From Octopus sinensis (Eukaryota), in NCBI RefSeq assembly GCF_006345805.1, contig NC_043000.1, forward strand, positions 44,082,001 to 44,146,000: a DNA stretch of 64,000 nucleotides, given 5' to 3'. The notes beneath the pieces were generated by a model that had not been told where the DNA came from, ran no database searches, and saw nothing but the letters and a program-made list of their open reading frames with translations. The translations under genes and the position numbers were made by a program. Positions 7,134-38,400 of this stretch are shown piece after piece (position 1 is the stretch's first letter; each line of letters opens with the position of its first letter).

Positions 7134-7453
7134 TTTAGTACCGCCTTAGCGAAGGTGGAGGTATTGTTTTCAGTTCTGCGTGTTTGTTTGTTTGACTGTG
7201 GACAAGCTATCTCAAGAACCGCTGGATGGATTCGGATGAAACTTTGGGGGAGTGTTTGGCATTGTGCCTGGCACGAACTGATTAGATTTTGGTATCGATC
7301 TGGTCCCGGACAAAGATTCTGGATTACTTTTCCTGTTTTATTACTTAATTTTTGAGAGCGATCGGGTTCATTTTTAGTATTATCTCTGGTTAATGGTTGA
7401 GAGGACGTTGGTGCTGCCTTGGCGGAAGTTTGCGTTCTCTGATTGCTCTTCTT
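7134..7453 (+). mobile_element. Non-autonomous Helentron/Helitron2-type element (HINE/DINE-like)
   Basis: 5' hairpin CCGCCTT-AGCG-AAGGTGG, body gtttgtttgtttg...gatggattcggatgaaact, and 3' end ccttggcggaagtttgcgttctctgattgc, all typical of this class. Confidence 0.7.
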
Positions 7454-7477
7454 TTATAATTATGATTGTTCTTAATG

Positions 7478-7888
7478 TAGTATCTTTGCCACTTAAATGT
7501 GGCTAACCCTTAAGGGTGGATGCTACTGTAGATTGTAGCCCCAGGAGGACACCTCCTCCAGCTGGCTATTGACACATTTCTGTGCCCTATGAGTATTTTC
7601 AAGGGGAAGCCATCCTCCCCATCTTCAATCTGACATGATAGACACGGACTCGAGTTTCTGGGTATTGACCCGTCATCAGCGTGTAACAATCACCGATTGC
7701 CGATGAAAAGTGGGTTCCCTTTGCAAATATTTATCCTTTTTCCAGTGACGAAAAATCACTGATATCGAAAAAGTGTAAACAATCAATAATAAATCTCTGA
7801 ATGAGGTATAAACAGTAGTTGCACGACATCATGAAGTATATTTGCCACTTAAATGTGGCTAACCCTTAAGGGTGGATGCTACTGTAGT
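7478..7888 (-). mobile_element. Diverged retrozyme-like monomer (~356-nt unit plus ~50-nt terminal redundancy)
   Basis: Colinear with the 8321-9412 unit. tttgccacttaaatgtggctaacccttaagggtggatgctactgtag occurs at 7485 and again at 7841. Contains an HHR. Confidence 0.85.
7642..7684 (-). ncRNA. Minimal type I hammerhead ribozyme (stem II closing pair mismatched)
   Basis: Minus strand ACACG CTGATGA CGGG-TCAATA-CCCA GAAA C-TCGA-G TC^CGTGT. Confidence 0.8.
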
Positions 7889-8014
7889 TTAAGATTAATG
7901 TCGTAGAATAAAAGTAAATAAAACCTTTGAAAATCGGAATTTAACAACGCGATAATTTCTTTGGAGTTTGGTCGTCATACTGATTTGCCATTACCTACCG
8001 ACGCTTCACGAAAG

Positions 8015-8077
<63 letters not shown>

Positions 8078-8488
8078 CAGAGAGAGACAGACAGACAGAC
8101 AGAAAAAAGGAAAATGTTCTACCTATTTGAAGACTATGGAAATATTTTAAATAAACATTTCATTTAGTTTTCCACAATTTATAGATTTTTCATTCTTTAT
8201 TCTAAGTGGAAAAGTCGTCGAAAAGGCTGAAACCGGAACTAAAATGTTTTTTTTATGATAGAGCAATTTTTTCTACCTTGTCTTATTTCCTCGAATATAT
8301 ATATATATATATATATATATATCGTGACGTATTTTTGCCATTTCAATATGGCTAACCCCTAAGGGTGGATGCTACTGTAGTTTTTAGCCCCAGGAGGACA
8401 CACTCCTCCAGCTGGCCATAGACACACTATCTGTGTCCTGTCAGTATTTGCAAAGGGAAGTCATCCTTCCCGTCTTCAACTTATGATA

Positions 8489-8533
8489 CACACGGACTCG
8501 AGTTTCGAGGTATTGACCTCTCGTCAGCGTGTG
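8489..8533 (-). ncRNA. Type I hammerhead ribozyme, copy 1
   Basis: Minus strand CACACG CTGACGA GAGG-TCAATA-CCTC GAAA C-TCGA-G TC^CGTGTG. All core nucleotides are present; predicted cleavage between 8495 and 8494. Confidence 0.92.
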
Positions 8534-8839
8534 ACAATCATAGTTGTCGCCGAGAATTAGATTTCCTTCACAATACTTATACTTTTTCCAGCGTCCACTG
8601 TCGCTGATATTGAAAAAGTGAAATCAAACAATGATAAATATCAAAGTAAGTTATATACAGTAGCGGTAACACATCGTGACGTATTTTTGCCATTTCAATA
8701 TGGCTAACCCCTAAGGGTGGATGCTACTGTAGTTTTTAGCCCCAGGAGGACACACTCCTCCAGCTGGCCATAGACACACTATCTGTGTCCTGTCAGTATT
8801 TGCAAGGGAAGTCATCCTTCCCGTCTTCAACTTATGATA

Positions 8840-8884
8840 CACACGGACTCGAGTTTCGAGGTATTGACCTCTCGTCAGCGTGTG
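8840..8884 (-). ncRNA. Type I hammerhead ribozyme, copy 2
   Basis: Identical to copy 1; predicted cleavage between 8846 and 8845. Confidence 0.92.
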
Positions 8885-9191
8885 ACAATCATAGTTGTCG
8901 CCGAGAATTAGATTTCCTTCACAAATACTTATACTTTTTCCAGCGTCCACTGTCGCTGATATTGAAAAAGTGAAATCAACAATGATAAATATCAAAGTAA
9001 GTTATATACAGTAGCGGTAACACATCGTGACGTATTTTTGCCATTTCAATATGGCTAACCCCTAAGGGTGGATGCTACTGTAGTTTTTAGCCCCAGGAGG
9101 ACACACTCCTCCAGCTGGCCATAGACACACTATCTGTGTCCTGTCAGTATTTGCAAAGGGAAGTCATCCTTCCCGTCTTCAACTTATGATA

Positions 9192-9236
9192 CACACGGAC
9201 TCGAGTTTCGAGGTATTGACCTCTCGTCAGCGTGTG
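9192..9236 (-). ncRNA. Type I hammerhead ribozyme, copy 3
   Basis: Identical to copy 1; predicted cleavage between 9198 and 9197. Confidence 0.92.
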
Positions 9237-11006
9237 ACAATCATAGTTGTCGCCGAGAATTAGATTTCCTTCACAAATACTTATACTTTTTCCAGCGTCC
9301 ACTGTTGCTGATATTGAAAAAGTGAAATCAAACAATGATAAATATCAAAGTAAGTTATATACAGTAGCGGTAACACATCGTGACGTATTTTTGCCATTTC
9401 AATATGGCTAACATACATACATACATATATATATATATACAATATATACAATATATACATATATATACAATATATACATACATACGCAGAGCAAGAGAGA
9501 AAGAAAGAGAGAACGTTAGCGGTTTTAGTAACCGACTATGGGTAAAATATCCGTTAAAACTATCAGTATCCGTTACCTGTGTTATTCCAGGGCAAAGTTG
9601 TGCAGGCATACCATATACGTCGAGCGCAGGTAACAATAGGATAAGCAAAACTTTATCAGGAACCAATGCAAATAATTAGAAAATGGATAAAAACCTAGAT
9701 TAACCCGTACATCGGTTAGACCACATTTAAAAGCTTGTTTATTGATACAATGCAAGACATAACAGAGCTAACAGCTGTTTCTAATCAGATTACCACAATG
9801 CAGTCTATACATAAATGCAAGAATAATATTCTTTTTCTTCAAAGTGCATTCTAATTAAGGCAACAGATCTTCATCACAGTGGAAAAAAAGTGCAGACAAT
9901 ATAAACAAAAGGATGAAGGAAAAGGAAGGAAAACATGGCTTAGACAAATAATCTAGAAGCCCAATATTTGAAGTGCACATAATTATTTACCATCCAAGCT
10001 CAAAGAGCGTAGATAAGAGCTATAGCATATTGATACATATGCACGGCTTTTATAAGTGAATTAGTCTATGTTGTACACTGTAAATGGCGTAGTATATGCG
10101 GTATTATCATTTAGATATATCAATACATGTATTATCAGTTTATATTTTCTCAACCAGCTAACGAAGCTATACTTCGACTCACTGTTGTTATTAGTGACCC
10201 AATTTCACCAAAGATAGTGCATTAACGCCACAAAAGAATGTATTCAAAATATGTCACTTCTTTTTAGATATAATAAGTGTAGCAATCACCGATTCTTTAT
10301 CACAGTACGATTTGCTTCAGCATGGCCTGCTTTGAGACAATCCTCCTCCCTATCTTCATCATCCTCATCACCACCACGACCGCCACGACCACGACCACGA
10401 CAACGATGACGATGACCACCACCACTTACAATCAGTTAATCCAATATGGTGTATTTTCAAGAAACAACAGGTTTTTTTAAACGCCTATGAGTTTGCAGTA
10501 CCTCAGTAGTTTACAATAAATTGTGTTTAACATTTAGTTTGTTTCTTATATATATAATCTGCATATATAAATCTAGTGTCGCAATATTTTTTTACTAACA
10601 TTACCACCTATAGTGTTTAAAATGAAGTGAGATAATGGAAGTTCTAACATAGTTATAAGAAGTTAATTGTTGTTTTTTATGGTATTGTTGGGAAGTATGC
10701 TGATAGTGTTTATAATGATAAACATGGGAACTATTTTAATACTGGTTGTCATGATATTAAATGAGATGATGATAATTATGACGTGCATAAGGTTGAATTT
10801 GTGTTATTGTATAAATAAGTCGAACTTAAACATGTATACATATGATAATAACACAGGAATATGAGACTTCGCTACTTAACATCACAAACACAAAAATATA
10901 AATATTTACTAAGAGAGTCAGATAACAGCACACGAAACAACTACATAGCCTCGATACCTTCAATAATCAAACCACATGCAAAAACAACAGCTGAAAATGA
11001 AAACAG

Positions 11007-13024: not shown

Positions 13025-13216
13025 TACGGTTCTATATGTAAGAGATGAGGAATTATGTACATTATTTACATTTGACGGATATTTGTCCTCATCTTTTTTG
13101 TTGTTGATACAGCGTTTCGGCTGATATACTCTCTAGCCTTCATCAGGTGTCTTGGGGAAATTTCGAACCTGCGTTCTCATTCCTAAGGTTTTATTATTAT
13201 TATTATTATTATTGTT

Positions 13217-14246: not shown

Positions 14247-17200
14247 GGAAGACACCGGGGACGTTTAAGATGTAAGAAGGAAAATACAGAGCTCCGAAAT
14301 CTATCCACAAACATCGAAAACAAGGACACCCTATGGAGCCAAAGGTTTACTAACAAACAATTGGACTATATCCGAGTAAGTAATACGAATTGAAATTTAT
14401 TACTATTTTCGAAACGAAATGATGTATTTTGACTCGATATTATCTCCACCTCTAACACAACACATGTAAACATGCGTGGAACAACACGATCATCCCCGAC
14501 CTCAAACACCATGTACAAAGGAACTACGAAGAAATTAAATGCCACCGATACTATTCAACCCAAGAATAACAATCGAGCGGTACGTACATTAAACCTACAA
14601 CAAAAAATGTACGAAAAACTACACTTGCGAAATAATGTGACAACAGAAATAAACGGACCGGTACCCTACGAAAATGACGACCGTCAAAATAATGGGCCGG
14701 CCGTTGTACCTCATGTCCCGCAATTAAAACCCAAAAGACGTAAATGGACACGTGAGGAATACATTTCTATCTTACACGCATAATTCACAGCAATGCTCTA
14801 CCCACAAAATGAAAATACAACAACACATACATATAAAATATGGAAGGAAAATAATAGAGGTATAGACTTGGATACAGCAATGAACCCTAATAAATTAGCT
14901 AACGTACGAAGATACATTCTCAAAGCCAAAAAAATATCAGAAATAGAAATAGAATATTTAAAAGAAAAAATACACCAGGAAAATGTAGATAGAAGCCACA
15001 CAACAATGCCCAATAATATAAACACTGAAACTGTAAAACACGAAGACAAACGCAACATTCCCAACAAACACGATGTAACAACGAAGGGAGCCTAATGATT
15101 ATGATAATATAAAAAGTCAAATAATCAAAGAACTAAAAACCACAGAGCTCAAAATGGACCACCGACCATACCTCCCAAGAATAAAAATAAACGCAATAAC
15201 AACACCAATTATAACAACATAAACCTAGCCGTCACTGAACTAGCCACTGAACAAAAAAATTGATATCACTGAACTAAATGACTTGATATATGCAGCAGCC
15301 ACTGCAGCCACAAAAGAAGCTGGATACTCACCCAACCCGCCCAAACAGGAGTACCACCACCCAAACAAACCCTGTGGATAAATAACATCCAAAACAAAAT
15401 TTAAAAAATTAGAAAAGACCTGTCGATTCTTAATGAAATCAGCAAATAAGCAACGCTACTGAGCAACAAAAGAGAACAAAAATGCTCCGCAAATATAACA
15501 TCACGGAAAAAGATTTGCCGGAGATAAAAGAAAAGCTGAAGCAAGATATCCTTGCCAAGCTCAAAGGATCCGCCGGTACGAGAAACGCCAACGTTTCTTT
15601 GAACAGAACAAAAAGTTCAACTCCGACCCCAAAAAGTTCTACCAAGAACTGGGCAAAAATAAAATAGAAGTCACTGCAGCACCAACGGCAGAAGAATTGG
15701 AAGAATTCTGGAAAGAAATATGGTCGGCGAACGAACAGGCTAAAAAAAGGAGTATGAAAATAACAAACTCGGCATCTGAACAACTTTGGACCCCCATAAC
15801 AACTGAAGAGGTCACCCAGGCACTGCAAAAACTAAGCAACTGGAAGGCACCTGGGCATGACAAGATCCCCAACTTCTGGTTGAAATATCTAACAGGAATG
15901 CACAAAAAGCTGGCTGAAAACTTTAACAGCATACTAGCAGAGCCAGAGACAATGCCTGAATGGCTCACGAAGGGGAAAACCATCTTAATTCCGAAATCAA
16001 ATGAAACAACAAAACCAGAAAACTACAGACCAATAACCTGCCTCCCTACCATGTTCAGGGCATTTACTGCAGTGATATCGCAAAGGCTGAACAAGCACCT
16101 GGACGGAAACATACTGTTCCCAGAAGAGCAGAAAGGCTGCCGCAAGGGCTCATATGGCTGTAAAGATCAAGTAATGATTAATAAAGCCGTAACTGAAGAC
16201 AGCCACAGAAAGAAGAAAGGCCTCAGTATGGCCTGGATTGACTACAAAAAGGCGTTTGATAGCATCCCCCACACATAGATCCTCGAAATACTAGCCATTA
16301 ACAAAGTAGCACCAACAATCATAAAATTCATAGAGCACTCTATGAATAAATGGCAAACAGTCCTACACCTCCAAACAAAAGAGGGACTCATGAAAACCAA
16401 AGACATCTCCATTAGAAGAGGAATATTCCAGGAGACACGCTCGCTCTCTCCACCCCTTTTCTGCTTGGCACTGTCACCTCTATCTGATATGCTAAATAGA
16501 ACTGGATGCGGATATAAATGTTACGGCAAAACGATCAGCCACCTTTTATATATGGATGACCTAAAACTATACGCTGCAAATGACAAACAGCTGGAAACAC
16601 TATTAAAGACAGTTCATGGATTTACCAAAGAAATAGATATGAAATTTGGATTAGAAAAATGCGCCAAAGTAACCATGAAATGAGGAAGACTAGTTAAGAG
16701 TAACAACATCACACTAGATAAAACCAATGAAATAAAAGAATTAGACCAAAGCCAAACTTACAATACTTAGGAATCCATGAACTAGATAAGACACAACACA
16801 CACAAATGAAAGAGAAAATAAAAAAAGAATATTATAGACGAGTTAGATCAATACTAAAAACAGAGCTCAATGCTAAAAACAGATAATAGGTATCAACACT
16901 TTAGCTGTCCCAGTTATAAGTTACAGTTACAATATCCTTAACTGAACACGAAATGAACTGTCCAAAGTAGATAGGAAAACAAGAAAAATACTGACAGGAT
17001 CTAGGATGCATCACCCAAAATCTGACATAGAAAGACTATATATACAACGTATAGAAGGCGGTAGAGGCCTTATACAGCTGGAAAACTACTATAAAATAAC
17101 CACCATAGGACTGCAAAAATACCTACTTCAGAAGGAAGGAAAACTGATCCAGATAGCAGCAAAACACGAGCAAAACAAAAAACTGTTCTCAGTATTTAAG

Positions 17201-18302
17201 GAAGCTGACAAATACAAACAAGAAATCATACCACCTAATAAACACAAGAAGAAGAAGAAGATGATGAAGAAACAACAAAGCTATAAAACAAATGAAATCC
17301 AAACTAAAATAGAACAGCAACGAGCCATGATAAAACGATGGCAAGAAAAGCCCCTTCATGGTAAATACTGCACTAAACTAAACGCAAAAGAAATAGACAA
17401 AGAAAAATCCCAGCAATGGTTGAGAAGCTCAGGACTCAAAGCAGAAACAGAGGGTTTTTTAATTGCAGCACAAGACCAAAGCCTCCCCATCAGAAATTAC
17501 CAAAAACATGTAATGAAAAGAAATATTACAAGTAACTGCAGAATATGTGGAGATGGACAAGAAACAATAAATCACATTATCTCTAGTTGCCCAGTCCTGG
17601 CTAAGAAGGAATATATTCACAGACATGACAGAGTTGGAACCTACATATATTGGAAGCTATGCCAACATTATGGAATAACAACAGAAAAAAGATGGTATAG
17701 GCACACACCAGAAAAGGTCACAGAAAACGAGAAAGCAACCATACTCTGGGATATGCCGATACACACAGATAGAGAAATTAAGGCCAACAGACCAGATTTA
17801 GTTGTCAGAATGTGGAACCTGAAAACAGAAACAATTCCTATCATAGTAGGTGTATTATTTATTTATTTTTTTTTTCTAGTACTTGTTTCATCATTTGACT
17901 GCGGCCATGCTGGGGCACCGCCTTTAGAGTGGTGAAAGACTACAGCAGGGATCACCACCTCCTGTCGGAGCCTCGTGGAGCTTTAGGTGTTTTTTCGCTC
18001 ATACCACACCAACGCCCGGTCTGGGAATCGAAACCGCGATCCTCCGACCGCAAGTCCGCTGCCCTAACCACTAGGCCATTGCGCCTAAAAAAAATATTCA
18101 GACAATACATAACAAAAACACCAGGACTTGCAAACACATATAACATACAGAAAATTGCACTACTAGGCACTGCACACCTCCTACGCAGAACACTTTCCAT
18201 ACAATAACCATCAGAGCATCACAACAAATCACAGCACATACCCAAGGCACACAGAGCTGCGCTCGGTAGTGAAGTGAAAGCACGCTATAAAAAAAACTAC
18301 TG
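14247..18302 (+). mobile_element. Near-full-length decayed Dong/R4-like non-LTR retrotransposon
   Basis: N-terminal RRKWTREE/KLANVRRY motifs; RT motifs WKAPGHDKI, NYRPITCL, WIDYKKAFDS, RGIFQ, YMDD; CCHC zinc finger CRICGDGQETINHIISSC; RPD of the RLE; C-terminus ALLGTAHLLRRTLSIQ. Multiple stops and frameshifts. (TAA)n on both sides. Confidence 0.95.
17855..18086 (-). mobile_element. tRNA-derived SINE inserted in the Dong/R4 element
   Basis: Minus strand aggcgcaatggcctagtggttagggcagcggac...ggtttcgattcccagacc matches the head at 42583. A-rich tail; splits the RLE coding region. Confidence 0.88.
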
Positions 18303-23714: not shown

Positions 23715-23928
23715 TTTTCTCCTCTAGGTACAAAGCCTGAAATTTTTTGGGAGGGGTCCAGTCAATTAGATGGAGCCCAGTACGCAACTGGTAATTAATT
23801 GATCGACCCCCGAAAGGATGAAAGGCGAAGTCGACCTTCGCGGAATTTGAACTCAGAAAGTAAAGACAGAACGTAATAGTGCAAAACATTTCGGCCGGCG
23901 TGCTAACGGTTCTGCCAGCACGCAGCCT
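23715..23928 (-). mobile_element. SINE, same head/core as 20454 but a different 3' tail
   Basis: Reverse-complement match of head and core; flanked by atagaaaatatta repeats. Confidence 0.85.
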
Positions 23929-23959
23929 TTCTTATAGAAAATATTAAAACATACTTAAC

Positions 23960-24173
23960 CTTTTCTATTCTAGACTCAAGGCCCGAAATTTGGGGAGAGT
24001 GGGGCAGTCAATTAGATCGACGCCAGTACGTAACTGGTACTTAATTTATCGACCCGTGAAAAGATGAAAGTCAAAGTCGACCTCGGAGGAATTTGAACTC
24101 AGAACGTAAAGACAGACCGCAATACCGCAAAACATTTCGCCCAGCGTTCTAACGTTTCTGCCAGCTCGCCGCC
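23960..24173 (-). mobile_element. SINE, second tandem copy
   Basis: Reverse-complement match; 26-nt flanking duplication at 23934-23959 and 24180-24205 (2 mismatches). Confidence 0.85.
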
Positions 24174-24576
24174 TTTTTCATAGAAAATATTAAAGCAGAC
24201 TTAACGTCAGTTGTGTTTCAACTCAGTAAATAAAGAACTTGAACTGATATCACGCTGCATTATAGGATGTTAAAACCGAAGAGAATTCTTGCTGTTGTAT
24301 CTCAAGTGTCTTTAACAAATTCCTATCACTGGTTTGGATCAGAATTTATTCATTTAATTTGCAGCTTAAAATTGATTTGTTTCATGTGATCTTTTTTCAC
24401 ATATTTTATATATCTATCTTACACTTCCTCGCATCTGCTTCTTTCGTTTTTGTAACGGATCACATATTATACAAAGAGATGAATAAACATACAATGAAAG
24501 AAACTACCGTTCAATACAGAAATAACGAAAGAAACATATCGCAGAAAATTTATTAAAAACAATACATAAAAGTGTC

Positions 24577-32439: not shown

Positions 32440-32596
32440 GTATATATATATTTATATATGTATATATGTATATATATATAAATTTATATATAGAGGGCAT
32501 TATACATACATGCCAGAAGGCATTATACATACATGCCAAAAATATTACTAATCCCACCGAATGCAATTTTTCAAAGTAAGACATTTAAAAAAATAT

Positions 32597-32644
32597 AGAC
32601 CTGTATCACAGTGATTTCATACTTACGTACTCATCAGCAGGCCT
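32597..32644 (-). ncRNA. Type I hammerhead ribozyme (482-nt family), copy 1
   Basis: Reverse complement of 35367-35414, identical. Confidence 0.88.
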
Positions 32645-33078
32645 GAATGTATTATAAATAAACAACGACCCTGCCCCGCTTAAGCCGATCAGCTAACTGC
32701 TCAACATCAACGAAGCACATGGGTGAGTTTACATATATTATAATCCGGGTAAATGGCAAACTTTTACGAATTGCATTTCGGGAGAGAAGAAGTTATTTCG
32801 GAATAAAAATTTAGCAATTAAGGACAACTACTTAATAAGGAAAACTTAACAAGAAATTGTCAGGTAGATAGCGTAAAAAACCTCATAAGAGAAAAAATTT
32901 CGAAAATAATTATTTCTTATTGAACATATTAATTTATATATAGAGGGCATTATACATACATGCCAGAAGGCATTATACATACATGCCAAACGCTAAGAGG
33001 GACAATTAGTCATTTCTACCAAAAATATTACTAATCCCACCGAATGCAATTTTTCAAAGTAAGACATTTAAAAAATAT

Positions 33079-33126
33079 AGACCTGTATCACAGTGATTTC
33101 ATACTTACGTACTCATCAGCAGGCCT
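33079..33126 (-). ncRNA. Type I hammerhead ribozyme (482-nt family), copy 2
   Basis: Reverse complement of 35367-35414, identical. Confidence 0.88.
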
Positions 33127-33607
33127 GAATGTATTATAAATAAACAACGACCCTGCCCCGCTTAAGCCGATCAGCTAACTGCTCAACATCAACGAAGCAC
33201 ATGGGTGAGTTTACATATATTACATCCGGATATACTTTGAAAAATTGCATTCGGTGGGATTAGTAATATTTTTGGTAGAAATGACTAATTGTCCCTCTTA
33301 GCGTTTGGCATGCATGTATAATGCCTTCTGGCATGTATGTATAATGCCCTCTAGATATAAATTAATATGTTCAATAAGAAATAATTATTTTCGAAATTTT
33401 TTCTCTTATGAGGTTTTTTACGCTATCTACCTGACAATTTCTTGTTAAGTTTTCCTTATTAAGTAGTTGTCCTTAATTGCTAAATTTTTATTCCGAAAAA
33501 ACGTTTCCTCTCCCGAAATGCAATTCGTAAAAGTTTGCCATTTATCCGGATGTAATATATGTAAACTCACCCATGTGCTTCGTTGATGTTGAGCAGTTAG
33601 CTGATCG

Positions 33608-35302
33608 TCAGTTTGAGTTCGGTCGTGTTTTTTTACGCTCGTAAAATTCGGTAAAAAAAAGATCAAAAAGAATTGTTGTTGTTGTTGTGGTAATTTTGAA
33701 CGGCGTTAAAGCGGTTTCGCGTTCCACTGGTTCTGCGCGTAACACTTTTTCTGTTTTGACGGCCGTTTTGGCCTGTCAGGCGGGAGGAAATGGATGACCA
33801 CTACCTAGTGGAGGAGTCGGAGGAAGAATGGATATTTGAGAGCTTGTCGGAGACATCGAACTCTGAAGACGAGCAAATCGGTGATGTAAATAATGTGGAG
33901 ACAAAAAACAGGAAAACGTACGCAGGAGTTGCAAAAAAGAAGACGGAACAGGAAAAAGAAATAAATCTAGAAAAATTGCCAGGTTCCAGAGGTATATGAG
34001 GAAGGACAGCGGCGAGGTGGAACTGGAACCACCACCAAAGAGAAAGGAATGGTACAATAAGAGGACCATAATTTACAGGGTGTTCGTGAACGATAGAAAG
34101 AAAATAGAGATCGTAAACATGGAATGGATAGAGGAGGCCCTGAGAAGATCGGAGGAGGAAATCATTTTTCTGACTCGAGGATCGAAGTACGGTACTGTAG
34201 TGGTGCATTTTAAAAGTGAGACTGCAGCGAGGAGGATGGCGGTGAAGGCGGTGAAGTCAGAAAGGGTAACACTTTTACCTATGTACTTGAATAGAAGGAT
34301 CACACGAGTAAGGGTGGAGGGAGTGCCACCAAACGTGGAGGCTGAGTGGATTGTGGCGGCTGTGATCAGCGGCCACGAGGAGAAAGTAGATATTCTCCAT
34401 GCCTCGGTCAAGACCGAGGGCTGGAGAGGCGTAATAGTGGAGCTGAACGTGCAGGCGGAGAGCGAGGTACTGGTGGACCTGGCGGAGAGCATTAAATTGG
34501 GAGACGTGATTATGAGAGTGTGGGTGGAGGGCAGAGCTCCACGTTGTTACAAGTGTGGCCTGAGGGCCACATAAGAGCCTTCTGCCCTCCCCCACCAAGA
34601 GAAAAGGAAATCGTTGAGGAAACTACAAAAGAGGAGGCCCCAAAAGAAGAAGAAATAAAGAGAAGCAGACGGAAAGAAAATGACAGAGGAGGAGGAGATG
34701 CAAAAAGAGTGTGAGGAGGGCAGAAAGAAGAGAAAAGGAAAGAAAAGGAAAAACTGTGCGAAGCCCCAACCCACCCCAATACCACCCACACCCTTGGAGA
34801 CCCTCCTGCCCCCGCAAACAGCAATCCCACCCACTCCCCGCCTACAAGAAAAACGAAAACAGACACACAGAACATACAAAAGCCCAGTCCTACTTTTTAT
34901 GTGTTGTGGGGAAGGGGGATACTGAGAACGCAAGAAGGCTATTTGAAGACGATGTATGGCAGGAGTATGAGGACGGAAGTTATGCGGTATTCGATTTTGA
35001 ACTCATGGGCTCTTTGATGAGCAAGTGCAATGAACTACGTATAATTGTATAACAGCATTTATGAAGGATGATATGATAGAGAGATATGAGAGAGAAATGA
35101 AAGGTGAGGTGAAAAACTTTGGAATCGTGATAGGAAACGGAAAGGTAAGTGATGCTGGCGGAGGGGGCCGTTAGCATCGCTTTCATGTTATCATTTTTTC
35201 ATTTTAACATTCATTTAATCATAATTTTAATCGCATTGTTTTATGTCCCCCATGTTTTGTAATGTTCCCTCTTCGTGGCCCCTAGTGGGTAATAAAGAAA
35301 TA
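33608..35302 (+). mobile_element. ORF1-only non-autonomous retroelement (Tx1/L1-like ORF1 with CCHC knuckle), 1695 bp, 23-bp TSD
   Basis: TSD gatgttgagcagttagctgatcg at 33585-33607 and 35303-35325. Starts TCAGT. Frameshifted ORF from 33790 with RRITRVRVEGVPP and CYKC-GLRG-H-IRAF-C. Ends AATAAAGAAATA. No endonuclease or RT motifs. Confidence 0.88.
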
Positions 35303-35366
35303 GATGTTGAGCAGTTAGCTGATCGGCTTAAGCGGGGCAGGGTCGTTGTTTATTTATAATACATTC

Positions 35367-35414
35367 AGGCCTGCTGATGAGTACGTAAGTATGAAATCAC
35401 TGTGATACAGGTCT
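35367..35414 (+). ncRNA. Type I hammerhead ribozyme (482-nt family), copy 3
   Basis: AGGCCTG CTGATGA GTAC-GTAA-GTAT GAAA TCAC-T-GTGA TA^CAGGTCT. Stem I is 7 bp (one G-U), stem II has a GNRA loop, stem III is palindromic, triplet AUA; predicted cut after 35407. Confidence 0.88.
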
Positions 35415-38400
35415 ATATTTTTTTAAATGTCTTACTTTGAAAAATTGCATTCGGTGGGATTAGTAATATTTTTGGTAGAAATGACTAATTGTCCCTCTTA
35501 GCGTTTGGCATGTATGTATAATGCCTTCTGGCATGTATGTATAATGCCCTCTATATATAAATTAATATGTTCAATAAGAAATAATTATTTTCGAAATTTT
35601 TTCTCTTATGAGGTTTTTTACGCTATCTACCTGACAATTTCTTGTTAAGTTTTCCTTATTAAGTAGTTATCCTTAATTGCTAAATGTATATATATATATA
35701 TATATATACATTCGTTATTATTTTGAAAACATTATAATTAAAAGCATGACATTTATACATAAACGCATATAATTAACTAGCTAATCGATAAAACTAGGAA
35801 TTCGGAACACGAAACAAAGAATCAGCCAGAAGATGAAGTCATATATAGATGCAATAATATGCCACTTAAGACACGTAAAAAAAATATGCAAAACATACCA
35901 TTCAACAACATTAGCCTGTAGTATTTACACATGTGAATGCATATAAATGTATATACAATCAATGTCATTTTTACAAATGCATACACATTGACTAGCACAT
36001 GCATTATTTATATGCATACATATGATATATACATATGCGTGTACTTACGTGAAACATCACAAATCACTCATTGTATAGATGGCCATATTTTATAATCTAA
36101 ATTACAATGACCAGGATATTTCATTGAGATGCAAGCTGGCTCGTTCCTTATTAATTAGGGAAATAAAATCTAAAGAACATAAATAACTAATCGATTATAA
36201 CTAAATTAGTAAGAAATAGCAATGTTTACTGAAGCGGAATTTGAAATAAAGAACCATAAAAATGCAAACATCAATTTAGCTGATTATGATGCCATATGGT
36301 GCCTTGAAGCATTAACTTTTAAGTCTTAATTGCTTAAGAATTCTTATTTCAAAACAAATCATCGAATACATCATGGAAATCCAATTGCCAAAGCAATATC
36401 AAGAAGAAAATTGACCTTTTAATGGGGATCCATTGAAAGTCGGTGTCAAAAATAGTATTCGCTCGTGGAAATATGAGTTTTCTGTAATAATGTCTGGTGA
36501 ACTACATTGTTTAATATTGGAATGGCTCATTCTAGCAATGATATTCTTGTTACATATAAGTTAATCGATATAAGTTGCTATATCTATATCTTAGAGCACT
36601 ACATCTGAAAGAGTTAACTTCTGGTGTCAATTAGCTTGTCAATATGTGCAACAAACTGCTATTGGCATCCTGTTCTTCATTTAATTGGTATTATTATGTG
36701 TATAAAATTTAGCGCATTTAAATGTTGTTCTTGGTCACTCTGATGTATTGTATTAGATGCATATACAATTCTTGTCTATATCACAGTTATTCCGAGTATT
36801 TGACAGTGGATGTGAAACTTGCACTTGATTATTAGAAGTTTGTGATTTTTTAGGTGTGCTATTTCAGATAGTGTGCAGGCACGAAATACATATACATCAG
36901 GGACGGGGAAAGAAGGTACTAACTCATATCAAAATTTTCTTCGAAACATATAACAAAGATTATTTTGGAGATCATAATATATTTTTTTATTATTTTTTAA
37001 AGAAATAACGTTTTCAATAGTTAAAAGTGTTTTGTTCTATATATAAGATTCTTAATATAAACTAATGGTTATGTATTTGTCACAGAAATGCAATCTTTTA
37101 CAAGGGCTTGGTAACCAAAGATGAATATGCTTAAATATCAATTTGGGTAAAGGTGTATCAGCGCTTAATTTTGACGTTAAACAGTATTTTGAAACTGAAA
37201 GAGCACACCTACAGGAACTCTGTAAAAATCTTAAAGTACTGGTTATATTGTGCATTACTTCTACCATTAGTCATTTGTGTATAGGAAACGGGCTCAATGC
37301 TATTAAATATACACATATACGCACATATATACATACACAAACCTACATACATACATACACCTACAAACACATATATAAAGCATAAACGTGTACATACACG
37401 TACACGCACGCACATATATATATAGATATATGTGCATAAATACACATATATATAAATATATATGCATAAATACACACATACATACAAAAACATGCATACA
37501 CACGCTTACATATCCAAAGACATAAGCATATACAAACGCATATATATATGTATGTATATGTATATATACATATATATAGAAACACATTTATACACATATA
37601 CATCTAAAATATACATAATATATACACATCCATTTTACGAAATTTTTTGTCCGAATCATAATCTCCGTGTTTTTCTACGTATTTCGCAAAAAAAAAAAAC
37701 AGGTTTAAAAAAATGAGAAACGAAGAAATTGGGAGAGAATTGAAATTTTAAAATGCAAATTGTTTTACAGATTCGGAATTCCCGTACTCGATATAGTGGA
37801 TTCGTGTAAAAAAACCGAAAGGAGGTTCGGTCCCTATCGTTTACCTCCACATTCGCAACCATATTTCGCAAGTTATAAATTTGCAAGTAATGTATATGGT
37901 TTGCAATATAATCCCAATTTATTGCATCTCAGGCAAGGATTTTAATAAATGGAAAACTTCGAAATCCTTCAATGCATATGTGAGCGCATGTACATTTTTG
38001 ATTGTGACACGACACTCAACAAACGGTGGATGATTTCACACTAATGTTAATATTTTTCTATACAAATGAGAAATATATTAGCAGTATCATACTTTATAAA
38101 ATCATTTCATTACAGGAACAAATTAAAATTCATCTCAATGATGACCAAACGTAAACAGAATCAGATGAGTAAACAAAGAATATAATAAAAGAAGGTTATA
38201 TCTACGATTTGTTGTTGTACAAAGCACTCCATGCAGCACCTGTTCGTTCATGTGACAAGATAAGTAATAGGCGACGGAATCGGGCTTCGAACCTTGTTTT
38301 GAGGCATGTAACTATCTAACAGTCACTTACTCTACCTGTCTGTCGTATCTCTCTCTTCCTCTCTCTCTCTCTATCTATCTATCAGTCAATCTCTCTCAAT

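Follow-up and report, generated by a model that had tools for sequence, protein, structure and literature searches.

Is a tandem repeat with a hammerhead ribozyme motif in every unit an ordinary minisatellite, or is it the genomic trace of a mobile RNA? The question is raised by positions 8321 to 9412 of the window, the 64,000-nucleotide stretch of Octopus sinensis DNA that was analyzed here. Animals have their counterpart of viroid-like circular RNAs in the retrozymes, whose copying back into DNA is still inferred. In our reading, which we hold at a probability of roughly 80%, the array represents a single recent insertion of a metazoan non-LTR retrozyme, a non-autonomous and non-coding element that was mobilized by the enzymes of Penelope-like elements (PLEs). 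The family to which it belongs adds an example to a known class, the animal retrozymes, and is no new kind of element.

Tandem Repeats Finder (TRF) resolved the array into 3.1 tandem copies with a period of 352, 99% matches, and zero indels, which agrees with the approximately 3.1 near-identical, head-to-tail units of ~352 nt described in an earlier note on this DNA. The units are 351 or 352 bp long. Read along the minus strand, the array starts at position 139 of the family consensus (window position 9412) and ends at consensus position 174 (window position 8321), within the first of two fixed end sites of the family, here called A and B. The features of the locus are as follows.

8321 to 9412, minus strand: probable single-armed retrozyme insertion of 3.10 units (TRF; blastn against the family consensus, 99.1-100% identity)
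9192 to 9236, minus strand: type I hammerhead, copy 1, C17 = 9198, predicted cut 3' of C17 (RF00163, 32.2 bits, E value 9.1e-6, full model)
8840 to 8884, minus strand: type I hammerhead, copy 2, C17 = 8846 (RF00163, 32.2 bits)
8489 to 8533, minus strand: type I hammerhead, copy 3, C17 = 8495 (RF00163, 32.2 bits; fold and cofold)
8846 to 9197, minus strand: predicted monomer 1, 352 nt, between the cuts at hammerheads 1 and 2 (from the C17 positions)
8495 to 8845, minus strand: predicted monomer 2, 351 nt (fold of -117.6 kcal/mol, z of -4.98 against shuffles)
8295 to 8322, no strand: (AT)14 microsatellite, the target sequence, abutting the 3' (site A) end of the array (TRF; sequence)
9413 to 9485, no strand: TA-rich imperfect microsatellite abutting the 5' end of the array (TRF)
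7480 to 7890, minus strand: older copy of the retrozyme family, 1.15 units, 79-85% identical, with a C.A mismatch at 10.1/11.1 of its hammerhead

Judged from its sequence, the hammerhead of the older copy is probably dead. With regard to a SINE reading, ARAGORN found no tRNA or Pol III head in positions 7300 to 9420. The open reading frames (ORFs) of at least 150 amino acids in the window are LINE-type reverse transcriptase (RT) fragments and bear no relation to the array.

The hammerhead of each unit reads CACACG-CUGACGA-GAGG(UCAAUA)CCUC-GAAA-C(UCGA)G-UC^CGUGUG on the minus strand, at 9236-9192, 8884-8840, and 8533-8489, and these are, in 3/3 copies, exactly the letters given in the earlier note. 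Both direct reading and alignment to the model show a complete core, comprising C3, U4, G5, A6, G8, A9, G10.1-C11.1, G12, A13, A14, A15.1-U16.1, and C17. The motif has the three helices of a type I hammerhead, with its ends open in helix I and with C at position H17. Stem I is extended by AUGAU/AUCAU past a UGU/U (3x1) internal loop, an extension that had been proposed as ATGAT/ATCAT and is borne out by sequence and fold alike; in copy 3 the extended stem I and its internal loop span 8478-8546. Because C17 lies at 9198, 8846, and 8495, the predicted cuts are spaced 352 and 351 nt apart, as had also been anticipated.

The search with Infernal and the Rfam Hammerhead_1 model (RF00163) that the earlier note had recommended gave a divided answer. 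All three copies matched the model over positions 1-45 of 45 with 32.2 bits (E value of 9.1e-6 in a 1.4-kb search and 4.2e-4 in a 64-kb search), but this falls 1.8 bits short of the gathering score (34 bits), and for that reason a default Rfam run lists no hammerhead here, while one with an E-value threshold does. A loose hammerhead core pattern occurs nine times in the window against 1.27 expected, a count in which the three array copies are mutually non-independent. The main evidence against a chance motif is the conservation of the hammerhead over the genome-wide family: among 133 hammerhead copies from 40 independent loci, 106 are identical and 127 have an intact core. The same 40 loci provide the insertion anatomy given below. 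Of ~266,000 candidates in an RF00163 scan of the whole genome, only 74 were scored, which makes that scan unusable as a census.

Helix III consists of 2 bp and a palindromic 4-nt loop, whereas stem II has 4 bp and a 6-nt loop. Since this helix III is both weak and palindromic, the retrozyme hammerhead is predicted to act as a dimeric (double) hammerhead, and with only 2 bp in helix III a lone ribozyme may be almost inactive. Modeling of the RNA is consistent with the earlier assignment of such short-stem, palindromic hammerheads to the dimer type. No hammerhead fold was predicted for a lone 69-nt segment; two such segments cofolded at -46.3 kcal/mol, compared with 2 x -20.8 kcal/mol, and the dimer contained an 8-bp intermolecular helix III together with both stem II hairpins. 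In the predicted fold of monomer 2 the 5' and 3' ends are paired in stem I, and the circular fold of the family consensus has -116.9 kcal/mol. The fold predicted for the monomer is thus stable and highly self-paired, as is that of retrozymes.

The family consensus is 353 nt long with 42.5% GC and no ORF, the longest open frame in a trimer being 66 codons. When the unit was searched for in the whole genome, as had been suggested, a dispersed, multicopy family was found: at least 1479 first-look candidate sites on many chromosomes and, spread over more than 20 contigs, 208 scored matches of 95-100% identity. Loci diverge from one another by 1.28%, and a median unit departs from the consensus at two or three positions. 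The largest arrays contain 9-11 units of 96-98% identity and could have grown by unequal crossing-over. A hammerhead in 3/3 units, a unit of 351-353 bp, the lack of coding capacity, low GC content, and arrays that directly abut (TA)n complete the genomic features of a metazoan non-LTR retrozyme, and the earlier designation of the array as a candidate octopus retrozyme has held up on every one of them. Between 60 and 73% of sampled family words were present in 14 small sequencing runs whose status as RNA is only guessed, and carry-over of genomic DNA from a high-copy repeat could explain them; among the runs listed as carrying family words, none is on record as RNA and none has an RNA-Seq library label.

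The anatomy of the insertions supports a link between the family and PLEs. At the 40 loci, (TA)n microsatellites are the site of nearly every insertion. Arms have their 3' ends at one of two fixed sites, A (consensus positions ~171-174) or B (~214-220), and nearly all enter the (TA)n with the sequence ...ACGTCAC(G) or ...TTTATCAT(TGTT); the 5' ends are variable. Head-to-head twin arms are the majority form. There are 23 twin-armed insertions, and the 19 of them that a script could classify are all A/B pairs, with no A/A and no B/B, and the single arms (n = 20) comprise 16 that end at A and 4 that end at B by the same script. At the center joints of the twins there are overlaps of 0-4 nt or short fillers. 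A hairpin between A and B was considered as the cause of the A/B rule, and folding gave no support for it. The arrays run unbroken through the cleavage site, and none ends there. Ten of 19 single arms lie between -0.10 and +0.15 of a whole number of turns, a clustering that is post hoc and weak (binomial P value of 0.009, Rayleigh P value of 0.16); as proof of a circular template, these whole-turn lengths are suggestive at most.

Microsatellite target, 5' truncation, inverted head-to-head copy, and one-sided tail are together the scars of PLE insertion, and a PLE family of this genome shares with the retrozyme its target and an optional tail. The genome yielded at least 5029 candidates for GIY-YIG and at least 6635 for RT, including open frames of 775-883 amino acids with an endonuclease (EN) domain or the N-terminal part of an RT, so that potentially active autonomous PLEs are present alongside the retrozyme; candidate frames of ~781 amino acids are located at C6:12731772, C9:97176874, C1:207476083, and C19:35628579. 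RVT_1 and GIY-YIG domains occur within a single ORF in that PLE family, of which 10 3' ends lie in (TA)n, 5/10 without a tail and 5/10 with a tail of ~36 nt. A link between the retrozyme and PLEs, suspected previously, is therefore supported both by its own insertion anatomy and by the like scars of a PLE family in the same genome. The sequence of the PLE 3' end and tail differs from that of the retrozyme unit. Compared with 30 PLE loci by blastn, the unit matched only an adjoining diverged retrozyme copy and AT-rich stretches of 28 nt (E values of 0.25-0.67), and the sequence up to 1.5 kb from the EN domain at these loci yielded no matching hammerhead or homologous pseudo-LTR (pLTR). The Rfam hammerhead search of 20 of the 30 loci was likewise negative, while a motif finder returned one doubtful hammerhead-like motif, at locus L054, which has the same ACTCGAGT helix III and lies near a decayed PLE EN domain. 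In a search of 5.8 billion proteins, the octopus PLE had no match of more than 60% identity, so that no close octopus PLE is present in that database.

These observations suggest a life cycle in which transcription, cleavage, circularization, and the identity of the copying PLE are the inferred parts. In a minus-strand transcript of at least two units, the 8-nt palindromic helix III (ACUCGAGU) would pair between copies to form a double hammerhead. Cleavage after C17 would release monomers of 351-353 nt with 5'-OH and 2',3'-cyclic phosphate termini, and these ends would be kept together by the extended stem I until a host RNA ligase circularizes them. The RT/GIY-YIG enzyme of a PLE would then nick a (TA)n stretch and prime cDNA on the retrozyme RNA at internal site A or B, copying on across the ribozyme site, from 1.5 turns to more than 7, and so producing a tandem array. 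Where both ends of the break serve as primers, two converging arms would be synthesized and joined by microhomology, giving head-to-head twins with one A end and one B end, and the extra stretch at the B end would correspond to the one-sided "tail" known from PLE insertions.

A tandem repeat whose Rfam score is below the gathering threshold might be taken for a minisatellite or satellite that was spread by duplication at the DNA level and in which the hammerhead survives as a relic or arose by chance, and some long arrays, such as those at L030 and L050, may indeed be products of unequal crossing-over. However, segmental duplication or slippage would predict neither the dispersal of hundreds to thousands of short arrays over many chromosomes at 98-99% identity, nor fixed 3' ends combined with 5' truncations of variable extent, insertion into (TA)n, and the A/B rule of the twin arms, nor the conservation of the full hammerhead core; for these reasons we give this explanation hardly any credence. 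It is also improbable that the array is a tandemized pLTR fragment of an autonomous PLE, that is, a solo pLTR behind which there is no independent element. Type I hammerheads and partial tandems are indeed known from PLE pLTRs, to which vertebrate retrozymes are sister, and the motif at L054 would fit such an origin. Against it, the arrays at the 40 loci are flanked on both sides directly by (TA)n with no attached ORF, the unit has no significant match in the 30 PLE loci apart from the adjacent diverged retrozyme copy, no hammerhead was found near the EN domain at those loci except for the doubtful one at L054, and the 3' end and tail of the PLE family have another sequence.

The remaining alternative accepts a retrozyme and concerns the template, which could be a linear, uncleaved, multimeric read-through transcript, with the ribozyme dispensable for mobility. 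Such a transcript would yield identical arrays, its use would agree with the unbroken passage of the arrays across the cleavage site, and little cleavage is expected of a single hammerhead whose helix III has 2 bp (PMC7229834). Fixed internal priming and arrays that reach at least 7 turns from parents of mostly two to four units are nevertheless easier to obtain on a circle. The near-whole turns of single arms point weakly in the same direction, as does the intact hammerhead in most of these young copies, although youth alone also predicts the latter. We regard a linear template as unlikely, though it deserves to be kept in mind. The explanation that we retain is a recent insertion of a retrozyme mobilized by PLE enzymes. 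We further propose, tentatively, that the pairing of A with B in each classifiable twin insertion, which has its parallel in the tail that PLEs of this genome either have or lack, may be a direct genomic read-out of Penelope integration, in which the two 3'-OH ends of one staggered (TA)n break are handed to two fixed priming sites that lie ~46 nt from each other on one (circular) template RNA. If this were true, the 353-nt retrozyme would be a minimal natural substrate with which to work out how PLEs transpose, a mechanism that is still unsolved.

No cephalopod retrozyme was found in the searchable literature, and as far as that literature goes, the range of the class grows to include cephalopods with the present family, which is young, abundant, and clean in structure. 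It would also place a predicted dimer-type hammerhead, previously tied to amphibians, in an invertebrate retrozyme. The full set of Penelope scars, including the strict rule of one tail per insertion, occurs beside intact Penelope elements with the same scars, which provides a concrete pair for a retrotransposition assay.

Metazoan non-LTR retrozymes have tandem units of 150-450 bp, with families described from mussel, coral, and axolotl (Cervera & de la Pena 2020, PMC7229834; review, PMC7761336). The octopus family resembles them in its 353-bp unit with one type I hammerhead, a GC content under 45-50%, the lack of an ORF, LTR, PBS, and PPT, and its dispersed copies in dimer-to-multimer arrays with a compact, self-paired predicted monomer. 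Dimer-dependent hammerheads are described in the same papers, according to which the hammerheads of most invertebrate retrozymes possess a stable helix III and are cleaved as monomers (PMC7229834; PMC7761336). In contrast to the latter, the octopus family has an amphibian-style weak helix III that predicts dimer-dependent cleavage. Like newt and axolotl satellite 2, Rtz331, and Rtz353, it has a unit size in the range of ~330-353 nt and a helix III that is very short, and it is predicted to act as a double hammerhead in multimeric transcripts (PMC7229834), but its sequence is unrelated and from another phylum, and its copies number in the thousands, compared with ~126,000 motifs in axolotl.

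PLE insertions are known for partial tandems, an inverted 5'-truncated copy, a tail of 30-40 bp on one side, and a preference for (TA)n (Craig et al. 2021, PMC8557442), and in vertebrates PLE pLTRs have been linked to retrozymes (bioRxiv 10.64898/2026.07.22.740005). The octopus family shares with EN+ PLEs the partial tandems, the inverted head-to-head copy, the tail at one end, and (TA)n. It differs from them in having no RT or EN ORF and no detectable homology to the PLE copies compared, and would be their passenger. Minimal PLE hammerheads cleave as dimers according to Lunse, Weinberg & Breaker 2017, as cited in PMC7761336, and in that account, as in the octopus, a palindromic helix III region permits an intermolecular helix between two ribozymes. 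In the PLE variants portrayed there, nucleotides of helix III and loop-loop contacts are usually missing, whereas the octopus motif keeps 2 bp and a loop in helix III, its stem II has 4 bp closed by a 6-nt loop, and its stem I is long and interrupted by an internal loop.

The earlier note had described about 3.1 tandem units of ~352 nt, each with an intact hammerhead, and had read them as a candidate retrozyme; the description is confirmed and the interpretation is supported. On all genomic criteria the array is a metazoan non-LTR retrozyme with predicted RNA products, falling short only of the formal cut-off of Rfam Hammerhead_1 (RF00163).

Features of the window
8321-9412, minus strand (ribozyme strand): tandem array (Tandem Repeats Finder: period 352, 3.1 copies, 99% matches, 0 indels)
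7480-7890, minus strand: older copy of the retrozyme family, 1.15 units, 79-85% identical
32481-35685: second, unrelated hammerhead repeat family, with hammerheads starting at 33119 (minus), 32637 (minus), and 35374 (plus)
15697-16278 and 17006-17935, plus strand: LINE-type retrotransposon remains (RVT_1 E 8e-12, zf-RVT E 4.5e-5)
23759-24205: 246-bp tandem repeat, 1.8 copies, 85% matches

On the minus strand, all units of the array carry CACACG-CUGACGA-GAGG(UCAAUA)CCUC-GAAA-C(UCGA)G-UC^CGUGUG. This is a type I hammerhead with an open helix I, a 4-bp stem II capped by a 6-nt loop, and a helix III consisting of A15.1-U16.1 and C15.2-G16.2 closed by UCGA. C17, the nucleotide 5' of the predicted cut, lies at 9198, 8846, and 8495, so that the predicted cuts are 352 and 351 nt apart, and stem I is extended by AUGAU/AUCAU past a UGU/U internal loop; both features had been proposed from the sequence and proved exact. 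RF00163, which the earlier note had suggested running, aligned to 3/3 copies across the whole model at 32.2 bits each (E value of 9.1e-6 in a 1.4-kb search and 4.2e-4 in a 64-kb search). These scores are 1.8 bits below the gathering score, and a run at the default gathering threshold is therefore blank.

The 351-nt monomer (8845 to 8495) has a predicted fold of -117.6 kcal/mol (z of -4.98 versus dinucleotide shuffles), in which both ends pair within the extended stem I, and the family consensus is predicted to fold as a circle at -116.9 kcal/mol. The minimum-energy fold of a single 69-nt hammerhead segment is not a hammerhead (-20.8 kcal/mol). Two such segments cofold at -46.3 kcal/mol; each forms its stem II hairpin, and the perfect palindrome ACUCGAGU pairs between the two molecules as a helix of 8 bp. 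This dimer is a predicted double hammerhead, consistent with the very short stem III and palindromic loop of dimer type that had been claimed. The unit is noncoding (longest stop-free frame in a trimer, 66 codons), has a GC content of 42.5%, and contains no tRNA-like part that we could find.

The window is C4:44082001-44146000 of a 2.72-Gb assembly of 13,516 contigs. A genome-wide search with the unit, as had been proposed, placed the family on many chromosomes: first-look candidates number at least 1479, and 208 matches were scored, with identities of 95-100%. The family consensus, built from 80 complete units of 40 independent loci, is 353 nt long, and the median unit has 2-3 differences from it. 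Units diverge on average by 1.28% between loci and by 0.96% within an arm (one tandem run within an insertion). One C-to-T change is common to the two complete units of the window, and each of the two also has single-T deletions of its own. Among 133 hammerhead segments of the family, 106 are identical and 127 retain the whole core, which at such an age shows youth rather than selection.

Some 430 bp separate the older copy at 7480-7890 from the young array, and the two share an orientation. The hammerhead of the older copy is CUGAUGA-CGGG(UCAAUA)CCCA-GAAAC, in which the 10.2/11.2 pair has changed compensatorily and 10.1/11.1 is now C.A. In the unrelated family at 32481-35685 (CUGAUGA-GUAC(GUAA)GUAU-GAA-AUCACUGUGAUA^CAGGUC), a minus arm precedes a plus arm; the layout is twin-armed with the arms facing outward, as in the retrozyme family. 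Weak hammerhead-like cores on the minus strand at 13106-13146 (CTGATGA...GAAAC) and 3153 (CTGACGA...GAA) have no Rfam support at an E value of 0.05 or better. The open reading frame fragments at 15697-16278 and 17006-17935 are unrelated to the array. Dozens of subthreshold Rfam "miRNA" matches across the window (mir-297, mir-466, mir-3149, and others) are noise, all lying on TA/TG microsatellites.

At the 40 loci, read on the ribozyme strand, nearly every arm terminates in a (TA)n microsatellite. The 5' ends are variable, and the 3' junctions are confined to two places: site A (...ACGTCAC(G) then TATA; consensus positions ~171-174) and site B (...TTTATCAT(TGTT) then ATAT; ~214-220). Neither coincides with the cleavage site or with the best UA-rich microhomology of the unit. 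In 23 insertions two arms stand head to head with their 3' ends outward; all 19 that could be classified by script combine an A end with a B end (A/A, 0; B/B, 0), and a further 3 are A/B by eye. The 20 single arms were scored by script as 16 A and 4 B. At the centre joints of twin arms there is either an overlap of 0-4 nt or a short filler copied from sequence close by, which is the outcome expected if two cDNAs were extended separately and then joined. In the window the insertion has one arm, 3.10 units long, that extends from consensus position 139 to site A, with an (AT)14 tract 3' and a TA-rich imperfect microsatellite 5'.

The arrays pass through the cleavage site and begin at internal sites, so the template was a circular RNA or else a multimer that had not been cleaved. 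Of 19 single arms, 10 have lengths that deviate by -0.10 to +0.15 from a whole number of turns, counted from the start of each arm, and a second cluster of 5' ends (266-333) lies in and beside the hammerhead and stem I structure. The clustering was recognized post hoc and points only weakly to a circular template (binomial p of 0.009; Rayleigh p of 0.16); a linear uncleaved multimer as the template for reverse transcription remains a live rival. One insertion (L020:1328-2029), outside a TA repeat, has 1.99 units (consensus 180 to 175) and starts 5 nt past its end point, as would result from the copying of two complete turns. The longest array observed (L030 and L050, G000:C4486:18500-26500) has at least 11 units of 96-98% identity and an arm of 2.2 units in inverted orientation; its flanks are not TA repeats, and it may have grown by unequal crossing-over.

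Insertions of Penelope-like elements (PLEs) are 5'-truncated partial tandems, often beside an inverted 5'-truncated copy, with a tail of 30-40 bp that is often at one end only, and are biased to (TA)n (Craig et al. 2021, PMC8557442). In the octopus genome, GIY-YIG candidates number at least 5029 and PLE reverse transcriptase (RT) candidates at least 6635, and open frames among them measure 775-883 aa; the one PLE frame that was read contains RVT_1, then a CX4CXXC motif, and then GIY-YIG. No close octopus PLE was found in the searched protein database, in which the nearest named relatives are bivalve proteins. The family of the frame that was read was examined at its 3' ends.

L055, L062, L066, L070, and L075-L080, ~1 kb downstream of the endonuclease (EN) domain: RT and GIY-YIG PLE family, 10 copies, ending in ...TTTTTTACAAATA

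In 5/10 copies this end lies directly on (TA)n, and in the other 5/10 it is followed by a ~36-nt tail and then (TA)n. The tail contains a perfect palindrome, CTCGTATACGAG. The retrozyme A end has no tail and the B end has a 46-nt tail, and we regard the A/B ends and the optional PLE tail as the same phenomenon, at one kind of target within one genome. The suggested Penelope-like mobilization is supported by the (TA)n target, one-sided tail, and inverted arms; the target and the tail recur in this PLE family, and this shared behavior is the strongest evidence that the retrozyme is copied by PLE enzymes. At 30 PLE loci, searched up to 1.5 kb from the EN domain, neither a hammerhead nor real homology to the retrozyme unit was found. 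A hammerhead-like motif at L054:2620 (plus strand; CTGATGA...GAA-ACTCGAGTT) adjoins a PLE EN domain that has decayed and lies on the opposite strand; its helix III palindrome is as in the retrozyme, whereas its stem II region, at 39 nt, is not.

In sequencing runs, 60-73% of sampled words were present in 14 small runs from six studies, which are only guessed to be RNA, and 67-76% in six larger runs. The runs with these words carry eight coded organism labels in all; none is recorded as RNA, and none remained when the word RNA-Seq was required.

No report of hammerhead retrozymes in cephalopods was found in the searched literature. The present analysis adds the strict A/B one-tail rule of twin-armed insertions and the match in tail behavior between the retrozyme and a PLE family that shares its genome. 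The link to PLEs agrees with the derivation of vertebrate retrozymes from PLE pseudo-LTRs (2026 preprint, bioRxiv 10.64898/2026.07.22.740005). In amphibian retrozymes, hammerheads whose helix III is short are inefficient at cleavage as single copies and efficient as dimers; most invertebrate retrozyme hammerheads have a stable helix III (PMC7229834; PMC7761336). In its short, weak helix III the octopus family resembles the former and differs from the latter. With this helix and the predicted dimer fold, it is classed as amphibian in style within a mollusc-type genome, and a predicted dimer-type helix III in an invertebrate retrozyme is a further addition.
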